A stretch of 64,000 nt of DNA from Magallana gigas (taxonomy: Eukaryota): assembly GCF_963853765.1 (NCBI RefSeq), contig NC_088862.1:4526001-4590000 (forward strand), read 5' to 3'. This document shows positions 55,001 to 61,645 of this stretch, piece by piece. The notes beneath the pieces are model-generated. The model was not told where the DNA came from, did not search any database, and saw only the letters and a list, made by a program, of their open reading frames with translations. The stretch's first letter is position 1, and every line of letters starts with the position of its first letter. A program made the translations under genes and the position numbers.

Positions 55001-56747
55001 AATATTTGATCACCAGGTAATTTCACAGACACCCCAAAACTTTTTTTAAAAAACATTTATTTAATGAACTCTACTGTAGTCGGATTTGAGTTTTATTTAC
55101 ATATGTGCGTATTAAATATCACTATCAAGTTATAAAACACATTATGATGAACTCTAGTCAAATCGATTTGAACTTTTATTACGTGTACATATGTTGGTGC
55201 TAAAGATCACCACCATCAACATGATCGATCAAGTTATCTTCTAAGAGCGTTATTAAATCATCTATGAGATGTCTGAGAATTTTCGCACCCAGCTTCCTTA
55301 CTAATAACTTATGTATCATTCATTGACAAGGGAAATTTGCAAAACTTTGATAACGTAACCTTCGTCAGAACGCACACAGTGCACTGGTAATAAACAATAA
55401 GTTGTACACAGGTTTGGTTTGTATCTAAGAATACAGTAGGATTTATAACAAATAAACAACATAATAAAAAAATTACATAATACACACATGTACATGTATT
55501 CTTCTGTTTATGTACAAAATAATTTCCAATTGATCATACAATCAAAACAATACAGTTGTACATGTATAAGAATATTATGATAGAGGGAATTGGAGGCAAT
55601 TTGGTAAAAACGATACTGAAAACATAACAATAAATCAAAATCTATAGTAACTGTAATACAGCTCTTGTAATTATGTAGCTGTTTTAAAAATATTAAACAG
55701 TTATTTATTGGGAAGATGAATGGAACCTAGCCCATTCACGAATATATTCTGTAAAGTTTGTATCGTATAGTGTGGTGGTCCATTGAAAGAGAATGCAAGA
55801 CAGGTGCCCGAGGTTATCAGGATTATAGCAAAGTCCGTGCACTGGTTACATGCACGTGTTTTCACGTACGTTCGAATTCGGATTAAACATGTCAGCTCTC
55901 AACGGTAAATTTACTTGCACGCGATATTGAAATGCAAAAATTTTCTTTAAATTTATTATCTACCTGTGTTAATAAATTAATTACCGTTTGGATTTTGGAA
56001 TTACTGTATTTTTAACATATTTATTGCATAGTATAACATATAATATGTAAGATACACAAATATTTCAACAGAAGTTCTAACAAGTGGTTTTCACCTTCAA
56101 AATATACAAAATGATTATAACTTTTACAATTAGATTTTGTATGTTGATATTTGCAGTCCATAAGATTTAGGGAAATTTAGGGAGAAATGTACATATTTAT
56201 ATAAATTTTTAAAAGTACAGATGTCAAACTAGTCGTTTTATTGATTTTTAAACAGCAGCAACTTAAAGATGCTGCTTTTCATATCATATATGTTATGACT
56301 GAATTAAATTAACGTCAAATGGCCGAGACCCACAAATGTAATACATACATACATGTATTAGTAATGTAAATGTCTAACTCAATCATTTATAATATGCACG
56401 AGTTGTTTTATAAAAGCATTTATGGGAACTTCTATTATTACCGATATCTATGTTTATTTTATATGTATATTTCACTTGTTTTGAATATAAAATCCTTTAG
56501 TTATTTTGGAATAAAAAATAAATATTGTTAGTACATGTACCGGTTCCAGGGGTTATCTTATCATGACTGTTGGGGTAAAAAAGTTACGTTGATGAATATA
56601 TTTGCACGAAAATGCAAATGCCTGTAATAAAATGCATGCAAAATGATTAAAATATATAATTTAAGCTTTCCTGTAATCTACCGGTACACACGTATTATTA
56701 CAACCGTCACAAAAACAAGTAAATTTTTAACAAACTCAAAACAATTT

Positions 56748-59700
56748 CTACATTGTCCTGTTCTTGGGCAGGAAATGCAGTGACTTTGTGAGGGTGGAGG
56801 TGGTGTGGGGGACAGAGTAGCTCTGGCTGGGGCGTATCCCCTGCTCCTCCAGCTTACCCAGGTACAGCCGATTCACGTGGAAGATGACGTCGAAGATTTC
56901 CCCCGACCTTCGACCGTCTCGTAAGGGGTTATACAAGTGTTTCTGTAACGCCTCTTTCAGGCCTTCGATGTACCAGGATAAAGCACTGTTATCTTCATAC
57001 CAGCCATATATGCCTATATAAATTTTTTAAAAAATGAGAAATTAAAAACAGTTAATAGGAAAATGAAGTACAGTACACATAGCTACTGGCTAGATTTTAG
57101 AAACTGTATCTACCATATTTTAAGCTCAAGTAGATTTGCATTACTTGACTTGTATATGGTTATGATTTTTGGGCTAATATAGGATTTCTATCTTTTTATA
57201 CCAATATCTTTTCATTCAACATTAGACAGAAGAATTGCCTTATCAAATTAAAACAGACACTACAAATATGTGTTAAACAAGAATGCATGTTAAAGATTTC
57301 TGGATTCAAGATATGATTTATAACAATACATAATATGTAAAACTTTGATGATTATAATATGTGAAAAAGTTATACATATATTAATTAGAAGTTCTATTAG
57401 TTAACTTTTGGGATAAAAAAATACACCCCACATACCAGGGATTGTAGAAACTTGACAGAGAATATCCGCCTCTGTGGGGATACTCTGTATTTCTGGCTGT
57501 AATCGGGATGAGGATGAACCAGTGTCTTTTACACAGTCAGCAATGTTGTAGGTAAAGGCTGGACACAGCTGTAATTACAACATAAATAGGTCAAGGTTAC
57601 GTACTTGCATCAAAATTCATATAGCTAATGAAGTCCTTGGGAACATAGACTACAAGTATACACTTGTATGGTAAAACCTATCAAATAAAACAGTCTCAAT
57701 AATATCATAACAGTCACAAAATTAATAAAAACATGTTTCTCTCTCTCTCTTTCTCTCTCTCCAAAAGTTTATTGTTATGTTCATACCTGCATAAAGAAAA
57801 GCTTTGGTTTCATGGCAAGTGAGGGGCATTTGTCAGCTTGGAACTGACTGATAATCTGTTCCACTGGAATCAGTTTGTCCGTCTCTCCTTCACAACACAT
57901 GACAGCGCCATCTATCCCGTAACTAAGGATGACCATCACAAAGCAGTCACAATCACTGTAGTCATTCAGAGCCGGATCCCTGGCTGCAAAGTATTCATAG
58001 TAAATATAGCACATTCAGCAAAATTAATGATCAAGAAAGTTGATATATAAAAGTTAAACACACTTGAAGATACAAATGTACGAGCCCCACTTCCTCAAAA
58101 GGTTACTGGAAGATATTGAGATTTGTAATAGTGCTACCTTGTCTATCAATACCATATGCCTGTAATAATGTCCAATAATAGCCTTCCTAACATGAAAAAA
58201 GATGCTGAATCATGGCTAGCCAGATCAACTTCTGTATAAGATATAATGCTAAATTTCTTTATGGGTTTGAAATAAAGTTTTAGTTTCAAAGAATAGCAAT
58301 AACCTCTTCCATCCTTGATACAATGTAATAACAGAGACCCCTACCATCCTTGATGATATCCATCAGCTGTGATGACGAGACGTCATTGATCAGAATCTCT
58401 TTCTGACCCCCTGACCTCCGGGTCACAGGTTCAAACGACAGAGTTTCCAGCAGGTTAGTCATGGCCGATGCATCCTTGATGGAGTCTTCTCTCTCTGGCC
58501 GCTGCCGTCTGTCCGCGTAACGCATGTTGTTAATCACTAGTGCTCTCCCTATTTTTCTGTGGTCCATTTTATATTCGGTTCCAAAGAAGACGGATTTAGC
58601 CATTGATATTGGTGCTGACACTTTTTCTCTGAAAAATCAGAAAACACATGTATGTTAGATATTAATTGGGATTCAGAAAGTTTTATATGAACTGTAAATA
58701 ACGTTGTTCCACATTGTTATGATTGGATATGAAACATAGAAGACCCTGACCCAGAAGTTTGTATTCATGTGCATTGAAAAATATGCTTAAAAGACAAATA
58801 AAATATATTTTCAAATCCTTGATCCCTCGTACAACATTTCAGGGCAGCATTATACAAATGTTGTGAGGTTTTCCCTGTTTCTTTTAAACATGCAAAAAAT
58901 TTTCATTCCAAATAATTTCTACCTCTGTTTAATTGTACAATTTTTATGGCATAATAAAGTGAAAACATTTTGTAGCTGATGAATAATAAAAATTGATAAA
59001 TTGTTCTAGGTTTACAAGTTGCTCATAGGTCATAAGTTCCTTTGTAAAATGCAGCTCAGGCCATGGTAGCTGGTATAGTATCAGTACAACATAGAACTCA
59101 AAACTAGTTGTTTACCGGTTTGTACTTGAAGGATAGATGGCTTTGGTTCCTGACTGGTGCACAGCATCTTGTTTTTCTGGTTCCTGTGTCCTACTTGAGG
59201 AAGCTTTGATCCCCGAGAGAATTTCAGAGTGATCGTCAGAGACCATATCAATGTCATTGCTATCGTTATCCACAAACATATATGGAATTTGGAACTGATT
59301 CCTTGGGAGATGCTCTGTCTCCCCAAACGGTGACACCAAACTGGCATCAACCTTGGAAAAGGATTTCTTCCTCCCATCAAAAGGACCTATCAATCAAAAT
59401 ATACTAGACTAAGTCTCATTACAATATAAATCACAAATTTGAGCTTTAAGAAAAATTGCAAATGCATAGAGAACACACATATTTTCTCTGCTGCATTATG
59501 AAAACACTAAACACGGTAATAACTTATTAAGAAAACAAATATTGTGGGTTTTTTAACATTACCTTAATATATATATTTCTACATTATAAAAATTGAAAAA
59601 AAATTCAACATAATAAATTCATATATCCCTTGACAGTCTCATGCTGCTTGCAGCTATCAGAAATATACATGTATACTATTAGAGAGTAACCAAGTCGGTG

Positions 59701-60614
59701 ACAGTTGTAAATGTATAAATTTATTTTAAAACCATAATAGTTTAAAAAAAGAAAATTCTCAGTGCATCCGAAAAACAAATGAGTGAGCACTAATTAAACT
59801 CTTTTTTTCTATCATAATTTTCCATAGTCCTCTGTGGGTCCGCACATTCCGGTTCAAGTCTACATGACCTATTGACCCCTTCCCCGGCCCTTTAAGTTAC
59901 ATTTGCGAGGTTTGGAAGTTTGCATTTTCTACATGACAATTTTCCAGAGGTTGGGTCCTGGTACCAATTGACCCCCCCCCCCCTTTAACTTTAAGTTACA
60001 CTGGTTACTGGTTAATTTTGGGGGAATCAAGTGAAGTCATACCCAAAATGACTCGTTTCGGACTCGTACCCAAACAAACTTGTATCGACCAATCCACACT
60101 TTAAAAAAGTTATGTCCCTTGGCCGATCCATTTCAGATGTGTAATTTGATTGCCCCAGGATATGGCAACCCACACATTGAAGAAATAAATTAAATTCAAG
60201 AGATTTTATCACAGATCGCTCAAATATTTGGTAGCATAAAGAAGAATAAAGATTGGTTTTTCCCTTTTGACCTTTCCGTTGACCCTGCAAAGGGAAACAA
60301 CTTTTGCAAAGTGTGGATTGGACTATTCAAGTGGTCCTGTCCTACCAAAAACTGTGTGGGTAATGTTAATAAAGGAAAAACTGATTAAATATCTGCCTAA
60401 GCCAGTTATTAAGCCGACAGCTGTTTGGTGAATTGAAGATCTTAAATTAAATTTTAACATTTAAGAATTAAGTCACAAAATATGAAAAAAGTATCTTAAT
60501 ATAAAATTTACAAAAATATTAAAACAACTTACTATTTGATCGTCCGAAGTTAGTGTATCTTGTAGTTGTACAACTACACGGGAGATTTGGACAGTCAACT
60601 TCTATGTCACCCAT
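56748..60614 (-). CDS. Effector-type caspase-like protein (peptidase C14A fold), ~410 aa, probably catalytically dead
   Basis: Minus-strand exons 60614-60533, 59386-59116, 58628-58345, 57983-57787, 57568-57436, 57013-56748 join in frame (1233 nt, all GT-AG). Caspase motifs: YKMDHRKIGRALVINN, CDCFVMVILSYG, KPKLFFMQ, IPTEADIL...STIPG, SWYIEGL, STLTKSLHF. The first exon (Kozak aatcATGG, GTAAGT donor) is the least certain. Confidence 0.88.
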
Positions 60615-60767
60615 GATTAATAGCGATGAAATATTCGATAAATTCTGATGTACGGTTCTTTAGTTCAGATAATATTAATATATATTCAATACAAGAAACT
60701 GGCCAATGATTACATTTGAAAACAATTTTAGCATAGAAATTTTCAAAAACGTAACCAGGTAACGTTT

Positions 60768-60779
60768 GAAAGCGAAAGT
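60768..60779. promoter_or_regulatory. IRF-binding element (IRF-E) upstream of the caspase-like gene
   Basis: GAAAGCGAAAGT matches G(A)AAA(G/C)(T/C)GAAA(G/C)(T/C); 154 bp 5' of the proposed ATG. Confidence 0.4.
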
Positions 60780-61645
60780 AGAATTACAATATACATATAC
60801 AATACGGCCCAACAACCCAATAGTTTCCCCCTTTAGTAGTTAAAACAGATCCACCTGAAGATTTTACATTATATTGATCAAAAACTTATCCAAATGCCCC
60901 TAAACAGACATACGTAGTTTCGTTTAATTTCGACATACGGAAGTTGTTCACGTCGGTACCAAGGCGTTTCGGCGCTAATACGTTTCGCCGCCCGCATCTT
61001 GATACGTAAACAACCGACGATGCGACAATCATACTTTTTTGAACGACTCTGTTCATTTGTTTATTTATACAAAATTCAAAACTTAAAAATACAGTCTGCG
61101 TTTAAATATTATATGAAGGGACTCCGGGCCGAGTAATTATATAAGATAAAAAATATTCAGAAATGAAAAGTAATTAATCAATCACGGATGAAAATCATTA
61201 GAGAATCATTGAGAATATCAAACTTCTATCATGGAGTGAAATTTGAGTTACTGTTATGTGTTCATAAATGTTCCTTTTCCTTTGTACAAGACACTGATTC
61301 ACTTCAGTAATTATTTTATTAAATCTTACTCCTCACCTTTGATTTAATTGACCCACTCATATTGAAATTTTACTCTCGTGGTTAAGTGCTAATTTCCATT
61401 GTTTTCAATTCTTATTTATATTTTGTTACACGCCATTGTCGGGAGAGAGGAATTAGGTTTCAGATTGTTCGGGTGTAGTTTTAGGATTCCCAGAAATCTC
61501 CCGTAACCGACCTAAAGTTTAAATAAAGCGTCATTTTACCAACTAGAGCATTTAGTCTTATTGTCGCCGGATATACAGAAACACCTTTTTTTTCGGTGAT
61601 ACTTCTTCCCAACCTTAGTTTTAAATATATCAAAGTTAATTAATT

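Follow-up and report, generated by a model that had tools for sequence, protein, structure and literature searches.

The stretch of DNA considered here, referred to as the window, comprises 64,000 nucleotides of the Magallana (Crassostrea) gigas genome (assembly GCF_963853765.1, contig NC_088862.1, positions 4,526,001 to 4,590,000 of the forward strand), and on its minus strand, at 60614-56748, it holds a gene for a caspase-like protein. A first-pass annotation made from the letters alone had described this gene as an intact but catalytically altered caspase with an uninterrupted 410-codon frame in six exons. The gene model, built from the minus-strand reading of 56500-60900, reproduces the splicing and the frame and places each of the codons named in that description exactly where it had been put. 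The exons joined in silico form a 1233-nt open reading frame (ORF), equal to 410 aa and a stop, and all five introns are bounded by GT..AG. Exon 1 (60533..60856) carries a 5′ untranslated region (UTR) of at least about 240 nt and, from the ATG at 60614-60612, the coding sequence 60614-60533, which begins MGDIEVD. Exon 2 (59116..59386) encodes a low-complexity, fast-evolving N-terminal region without a match to any Pfam family. The p20-like part begins in exon 3 (58345..58628), which matches PF00656 and encodes R164 at 58492-58490 within the motif REDSIKDA. Exon 4 (57787..57983) encodes the p20 core, with Tyr234, Cys242 followed by a three-residue insert, and Q278 as its final codon. Exon 5 (57436..57568) continues with L-C280-P-A, the intersubunit linker and the start of the p10-like part, and the coding part of exon 6 (56748..57013) provides the p10-like subunit with G326-W-Y328, the beta6 strand (about residues 390-398) and the TAG stop at 56750-56748.

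This structure is mirrored in RNA. Reads and contigs of four RNA runs were placed on 56400-60900, and the introns are seen as joints of 57012 to 57435, 57568 to 57787, 57983 to 58345, 58628 to 59116 and 59384 to 60531. The ends of the joints read CT..AC on the plus strand, which is GT..AG on the strand of the gene, and the last joint (with its cut at +2) is present in all four runs. Read depth is high in exon bins and low in intron bins. In a raw poly(A) run the first mates over the exons lie on the plus strand only, which in a stranded library means minus-strand RNA. For exon 1, contigs X15, X17 and X19 span 60531/60533 to 60854/60856, and the alignment of an orthologous transcript (L021) reaches 60906 on the 5′ side. 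Eleven coding differences are listed in the RNA, six of them synonymous and five non-synonymous, and four of the latter five lie in the N-terminal exon 2. Exon 4 shows no difference in X15, X17 and X19, which come from three studies, nor does the QLCPA stretch in X15 and X19. Moreover, the clusters of related proteins hold 50 distinct Crassostrea variants, and SYG is found in all 49 that cover the site, as are QLCPA and GWY in all 44 that reach theirs. The TAC codon for which confirmation in reads and transcripts had been sought is thus exact in the RNA of three studies, and the suggestion that the tyrosine might be an allele or an error does not hold. The gene is present in a single copy: when all 564 Mb of the assembly were searched in six frames, the matches were its own exons, on C10, and, at 48% identity or less in exon 4, those of other caspase genes.

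The gene can be matched with one that has already been catalogued. Clusters at 90% identity around the window protein contain XP_011428235.1 ('caspase-7 [Crassostrea gigas]', 410 aa) and UniProt K1QZ69_MAGGI, as well as XP_034310204.1/XP_034310205.1 (392 aa). The caspase domains of these accessions are identical save for a few allelic residues, and their N-termini differ by indels. In the survey by Vogeler et al. (2021, BMC Genomics 22:80; PMC7836458), supplementary file 1 lists XP_034310204/XP_034310205 as 'Cg3/7-like'. The window gene is the annotated C. gigas 'caspase-7' and the Cg3/7-like of that study. According to the same paper, Cg3/7-like stands as a lone gene apart from the clustered Cg3/7-like A-H, the 'caspase-3/7-like' group has 'highly diverse p20 active sites', and Cg3/7-like is the sole group member to retain the conserved p20 histidine (PMC7836458). 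However, the sequence of XP_034310204 (P0176) reads VVLSYG with no histidine nearby, and it appears to contradict the published statement, which is taken from the paper's text, its supplements being without sequence motifs. The text further reports that His or Cys is missing from several oyster caspases, which may be inactive, names a His-to-Tyr change in Cg3A, and leaves open whether the caspase-3/7-like group occurs outside C. gigas (PMC7836458). A literature search by accession (XP_011428235, K1QZ69, XP_034310204/5) found no paper, and a search of work on C. farreri, M. coruscus and lophotrochozoan caspases returned nothing specific to the Cg3/7-like group; Qu et al. (2014) covers other genes. 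The UniProt entry K1QZ69 (435 aa), an older model, begins MRAAKRISAETPWYRREQLPYVEIKRNY, which belongs to a small minus-strand ORF (60878-60997) located upstream of the start codon at 60614. Newer gene models and orthologous transcripts begin at MGDIEVD, and the upstream start is probably an artefact of the 2012 gene model.

Peptidase_C14 (PF00656) is the sole Pfam domain of the protein, with an E-value of 1.3e-30 and 107 bits against a cutoff of 21.4; this full-length search used allele P0151, which differs from the window protein only at R371G. At E-values up to 1, no family besides PF00656 was found in the oyster, Saccostrea and Pecten proteins, and the N-terminus of about 130 residues matched no Pfam family. 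The absence of a DED or CARD, noted from the letters at the outset, is borne out by this search. A confident caspase fold emerged from the structure prediction that had been proposed for the active site. The AlphaFold2 model of the domain alone, computed from an alignment of 90 sequences, has a mean predicted local distance difference test (pLDDT) of 86.7 and a predicted template modelling score (pTM) of 0.87, and the intersubunit linker (pLDDT <50) is its sole disordered part. This model was preferred over a full-length one made from 12 sequences (pLDDT 49). In Foldseek its best PDB folds were caspase-7, caspase-6, caspase-8 and Spodoptera (Sf) caspase-1, with E-values of about 1e-18 and target template modelling (TM) scores of 0.8-0.85. 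Together with the lack of a DED or CARD, these folds agree with the earlier designation of the protein as effector-type.

Several of the residues that would make such a fold a protease have been altered. PDB entries of caspase-8, as well as of an ancestral effector caspase-3/6/7 obtained by reconstruction, align with exon 4 over its full length (E-values down to 3.6e-12), and the SHG of both coincides with SYG. Tyr234, encoded by TAC at 57921-57919 within ILSYG, therefore stands in the place of the catalytic histidine. Residue columns were scored in an alignment of 90 caspase-domain sequences, 71 of which are His-bearing domains; column 234 is H in 71/71 of these and Y in 12/12 members of the clade to which the oyster protein belongs. 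In the 71 His-type domains the pentapeptide around the catalytic cysteine has Q in 65, A in 60, C in 68, R in 41 or Q in 24, and G in 68. The oyster version, QLCPA, keeps Q278 and C280 (TGT at 57565-57563), whereas A has become L, R/Q has become P and G has become A, so the proposed change from QACRG with retention of the cysteine stands in the gene model. The large-subunit arginine and the glutamine are likewise kept, as had been read. In a PDB alignment P-E-R164 of exon 3 falls on the P-E-R of caspase-6, the carrier of the large-subunit S1 Arg. The replacement of S-W-R by G326-W-Y328 (57005-56997) is equally real: the small-subunit S1 Arg column is R in 62/71 His-type domains and E329 in the oyster, with Y328 as an inserted residue. 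A weak PDB alignment (E-value 0.12) sets the exon 6 segment SWYIEG on the SWYIQD of the caspase-6 small subunit, and the exon 5 piece alone had no match in the PDB. The S1 pocket for Asp is therefore incomplete in oysters, with R164 and Q278 present and the small-subunit Arg gone, while the Gly of the oxyanion hole is retained.

Relatives of this gene are found well beyond the Pacific oyster. Word-based and exhaustive protein searches returned sequences from Saccostrea echinata, Ostrea edulis, Mizuhopecten yessoensis, Pecten maximus, Ylistrum balloti and Tegillarca granosa, together with two Crassostrea-like transcript sets (P0001, P0153), a Saccostrea-like one (P0004) and a scallop-like one (P0010). 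The word-based searches gave no mussel, pearl-oyster or heterodont orthologue, by a method that cannot establish absence. With orthologues in other oysters, scallops and an ark clam, the question raised in 2021 as to whether the group is specific to the oyster receives an answer. Y234, G235, C242, C265, C280, R161, R164 and the KPKLFF block are invariant in 12 aligned orthologues. In the 12-member clade set that includes a Tegillarca paralogue (P0054), Tyr234, Gly235 and Ser233 are present in 12/12 and Cys280, Gln278 and Arg164 in 11/12, and the Arg and Gly of the pentapeptide are lost throughout; this is how the proposed check of SYG and QLCPA in orthologues turned out. The invariant Cys242 is followed by the three-residue insert, which is absent from 71/71 canonical domains. 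The first-pass annotation had counted three independent active-site changes. All three are real, but they are of unequal age: the whole clade has Tyr234 and is without the Arg and Gly of the pentapeptide, while the small-subunit Arg is retained in scallops (GWGR). Scallop orthologues also have the canonical Gly at positions 166 and 334, and oysters have replaced all three residues. The substrate groove was thus degraded stepwise, and further in oysters.

In a maximum-likelihood tree of 43 caspase domains, which is unrooted and was computed by a quick method, 13 SYG sequences form one clade with a Shimodaira-Hasegawa-like approximate likelihood ratio test (SH-aLRT) value of 99, and the oyster, scallop and ark-clam sub-clades are each supported at 99-100. 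Since a single SYG clade contains sub-clades of all three, the simplest reading is that the His-to-Tyr change is older than the split of the three bivalve orders. The lines of Ostreida, Pectinida and Arcida separated in the early Palaeozoic. Saccostrea and Pecten have introns at the same places of the caspase domain as the window gene, and their reading frame is also intact. Selection on the gene had been suspected from its preserved frame and splicing, and the ratio of non-synonymous to synonymous substitution rates (dN/dS) supports the suspicion. Pairwise values by the Nei-Gojobori method could be taken from four pairs with unsaturated dS (Ostrea edulis did not enter this comparison; Crassostrea paired with Saccostrea, Ostrea or Pecten gives a saturated dS). 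For the caspase domain they are 0.127 for the window gene against P0001 (dS 0.33, bootstrap interval 0.07-0.21), 0.076 for the window gene against P0153, 0.106 for P0001 against P0153, and 0.142 for P0004 against Saccostrea. The corresponding pairwise values for the N-terminal region are 0.34-0.67. The substitution patterns thus point to a caspase domain under strong purifying selection and a fast-evolving N-terminal tail.

SYG is also read in other molluscan caspases. At C2 18.76-18.97 Mb, six tandem caspase-like paralogues (L009, L010, L011, L012, L014, L020) read LSYG at the position of the histidine, followed by a shared CC/C-x-D feature. The exon that comes after ...FMLQ has (L)EAVPY in them, so that the catalytic cysteine is lost too; this cluster is probably the 'Cg3/7-like A-F' of Vogeler et al. 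(2021). A second SYG group consists of L002 (C7 42592546-42592710) and the sequences P0022 of Dreissena polymorpha and P0211 of Haliotis rubra; it is caspase-3-like and fits the description of Cg3A. Cg3A-type caspases resemble Cg3/7-like in having the same His-to-Tyr change with the cysteine kept. Unlike Cg3/7-like, they retain QAC, as Dreissena also does SWR, and the tree puts them on a branch of their own. The change in the Cg3A type and that in the Cg3/7-like clade may have arisen independently, with two changes on the tree and its starred branches compatible with one origin. His-to-Tyr would then be a recurrent change in molluscan caspases.

Outside the caspase domain the orthologues have little in common, and the tails of oysters and scallops cannot be aligned with one another. 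Nevertheless, 16 motifs of the type [LIV]ExD were counted outside the caspase domain over nine orthologues, where 1.5 are expected. This count is reached by 0/3000 shuffles but is taken over related sequences and is therefore not one of independent events, and at least one such motif is present in 8/9 orthologues. Crassostrea, for example, has DIEVD at residues 3-7 (DIKVD in one of its orthologues), Saccostrea and Ostrea have SLEIDG, and in scallops the N-terminus contains DLETD units in repeated form. The opening MGDIEVD had been singled out as an IExD-like site, and its IEVD does belong to this enriched set. Since the motif recurs at different positions in a fast-evolving region, (I/L)ExD appears to be a short motif maintained in the tails. 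Motifs of this type are preferred by initiator-type caspases. Two further candidates were rejected: neither Saccostrea nor Ostrea conserves 'SAPI', a putative IAP-binding motif in front of the domain, and linker processing at 'YNIAD' as a clade-wide feature is confined to oysters and absent from scallops. The scallop orthologues P0156, P0157, P0158 and P0010 share a type of C-terminal ending, namely …DLDVDTG, …DDLETG, …DLETDTG and …HLETG. Within C. gigas, exon 2 is highly polymorphic, with alleles that have an 8-aa indel, a 12-aa indel or a 2-aa insert (P0162, P0176, P0188), and one RNA contig carries seven differences, four of them non-synonymous, within the 55 bp of 59161-59215.

Active caspases pair through beta6, and the same arrangement is predicted here. 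A homodimer model of residues 128-410 scored 0.73, with 0.00 for the best of three controls, though this score may be a memory of the caspase dimers already solved. Residues 384-400 make up the modelled interface, with 394 against 394, and this is the two-fold interface at beta6 that is canonical for caspases. At least 79% of contacts are common to the runs, and the partner has a pLDDT of at least 79. The mark applied is reached by 21/30 proteins solved as one-chain pairs and 0/23 solved as single chains, and on eukaryotes by 17/29 pairs (animals 7/16) and 0/30 single chains. The model should be taken as a likeness to caspase dimers and not as a demonstration of binding.

The gene is a real, conserved, transcribed and correctly spliced pseudo-caspase, neither an error nor a pseudogene. 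As an explanation of the whole, we hold it rather probable that Cg3/7-like is an effector-type caspase-fold protein that acts as a regulatory pseudo-caspase. The His-Cys dyad is established as needed for proteolysis; without the catalytic histidine, Cg3/7-like would most likely not be a conventional Asp-directed protease. It probably uses the beta6 interface in the canonical way to pair with itself or an active caspase, and through its tail motifs it is probably a substrate or competitor of initiator-type caspases that prefer (I/L)ExD. In this way it could either dampen caspase activity, as c-FLIP does, or enhance it, as CASPS18 does. We infer this non-proteolytic role from the sequence and the models, the predicted dimer interface and the enriched (I/L)ExD tails being its pointers.

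Several points weigh against it. Cys280, Gln278, Gly235 and Arg164 are nearly invariant throughout the clade, which is not usual in a fully dead site and leaves room for residual or altered chemistry, and the C2 paralogue cluster has lost its cysteine, which Cg3/7-like has not. A plain 'dead enzyme' reading leaves one feature unexplained, namely the long retention of the cysteine without the histidine. In addition, the (I/L)ExD tails could serve another purpose, their motifs having been counted in related sequences; the dimer model is silent on heterodimers; and no paralogue adjoins the gene.

Alternatively, the protein might still be an enzyme. Cys280 would be the nucleophile of a rewired site in which Tyr234, perhaps with the Cys242 insert, takes over proton transfer or gives rise to a novel specificity, or to a role as a redox or covalent sensor. 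The clade is what such a site would look like in that Cys280, Gln278 and Arg164 (11/12 each), Gly235 and Ser233 (12/12 each) are kept, Tyr234 is fixed in 12/12 and not drifting, Cys242 is invariant beside an insert that 71/71 canonical domains lack, the domain is under strong purifying selection, and the dead C2 paralogues did lose their cysteine. We nevertheless find this unlikely. According to PMC7836458, all characterised clan CD peptidases use the His-Cys dyad, and the canonical groove is degraded: the pentapeptide Arg and Gly are lost, and oysters are also without the small-subunit S1 Arg, Gly166 and Gly334. To the same low degree one may suppose that the set of Tyr234, Cys280 and Cys242 insert is a new functional site on the caspase fold, be it a non-canonical Cys enzyme, a covalent or redox sensor or a substrate trap.

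The tails invite another thought, that the protein is a decoy substrate or sink whose (I/L)ExD motifs and caspase-like surface would soak up initiator caspases, IAPs or pathogen caspase inhibitors without dimerising with active caspases. The enrichment of [LIV]ExD in tails that cannot be aligned (16 against 1.5 expected, 8/9 orthologues) and that evolve fast yet retain the motif would suit a decoy, but one made of tails alone would need no caspase domain at a dN/dS of about 0.1. DIKVD stands for DIEVD in one Crassostrea orthologue, and no neo-N-terminus of the IAP-binding type is conserved, SAPI not being kept in Saccostrea or Ostrea. Such a decoy is accordingly improbable in our view. As for a decaying paralogue that is transcribed as a pseudogene, or a tyrosine that is an artefact of the assembly or of one allele, His-to-Tyr needs a change of one base, and many caspase duplicates with degenerate sites exist in oysters. 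However, TAC is read in the RNA of three studies and SYG in 49/49 variants, all orthologues from oysters to ark clams have the tyrosine, the gene occurs in a single copy, and Saccostrea and Pecten preserve both the frame and the intron positions. A caspase-domain dN/dS of 0.08-0.14 excludes decay, and we regard the artefact and the pseudogene together as exceedingly improbable.

Returning to the regulatory pseudo-caspase, to our knowledge dead caspases with a regulatory role are known from a few cases only, namely c-FLIP, CASPS18 and CSP-2/3. At high dose, c-FLIP inhibits. The human pseudo-caspase c-FLIP(L) acts by pairing with an active caspase (PMC7586951), and the oyster protein is like it in having a caspase fold, no working dyad and a history of being kept by selection. 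c-FLIP, in contrast, has tandem DEDs, is a paralogue of caspase-8 and lacks the cysteine, whereas the oyster protein has no DED, an effector-like fold and its cysteine. That c-FLIP, the best-known inactive homologue, has DEDs was part of the first-pass annotation. A DED-less decoy caspase has a precedent in CASPS18 of Aedes aegypti, which is described as having no catalytic domain of its own and as an enhancer of its paralogue CASPS19 (Bryant et al., 2010, cited in PMC4840389). As described there, CASPS18 is, like the oyster protein, an effector-type caspase homologue without a DED, and it has a regulatory role; it works with a close co-expressed paralogue, whereas the oyster gene is single copy, its nearest relative having about 48% identity in one exon. 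The oyster gene is also far older, being common to three bivalve orders. It therefore departs from the c-FLIP pattern because it has no DEDs and from the CASPS18 pattern because it has no close paralogue. CSP-3 of C. elegans lacks the whole active-site region, unlike the oyster protein with its two subunits, and its anti-apoptotic role was not reproduced (PMC3591282).

Oysters have very large repertoires of apoptosis and immune genes, and the control of apoptosis is central to their response to ostreid herpesvirus 1 (OsHV-1) and Vibrio, the causes of heavy losses in aquaculture. That oyster caspases can lack the dyad has already been reported, and in this respect the gain is incremental; both the gene itself and this general remark are in print. 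What is new is that Cg3/7-like has Tyr and not His, with Tyr234 invariant in the orthologous group and Cys280 kept in all members but one, and that it is the single-copy, ancient member of a group spanning at least Ostreida, Pectinida and Arcida, with a Cys242 insert specific to its clade, a strongly constrained caspase domain and tails enriched in (I/L)ExD. As a single-copy, expressed and ancient gene in which the cysteine is kept while the histidine is lost, Cg3/7-like offers a clean handle on how caspases without catalysis tune cell death in lophotrochozoans.

Two regions around the coding sequence complete the locus. In intron 1, about 300 bp at 60024-60330 have a very high RNA depth on both strands, with many variants and loose ends, in all four runs; this looks like a dispersed repeat or transposable element that is transcribed from many other loci and is not part of the caspase mRNA. 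Downstream of the stop, the 3′ UTR covers at least 56269..56747 on the minus strand, where transcript L021 is continuous from 57015 to 56269, and it is probably longer. The X19 contig (2449 nt) extends 1225 nt past 56400, over 56269-55175 of the window, which would imply a 3′ UTR of at least 1.5 kb or read-through into the adjoining sequence. Candidate poly(A) signals downstream of the stop lie at 56458, 56242, 56025, 55957 and 55709.

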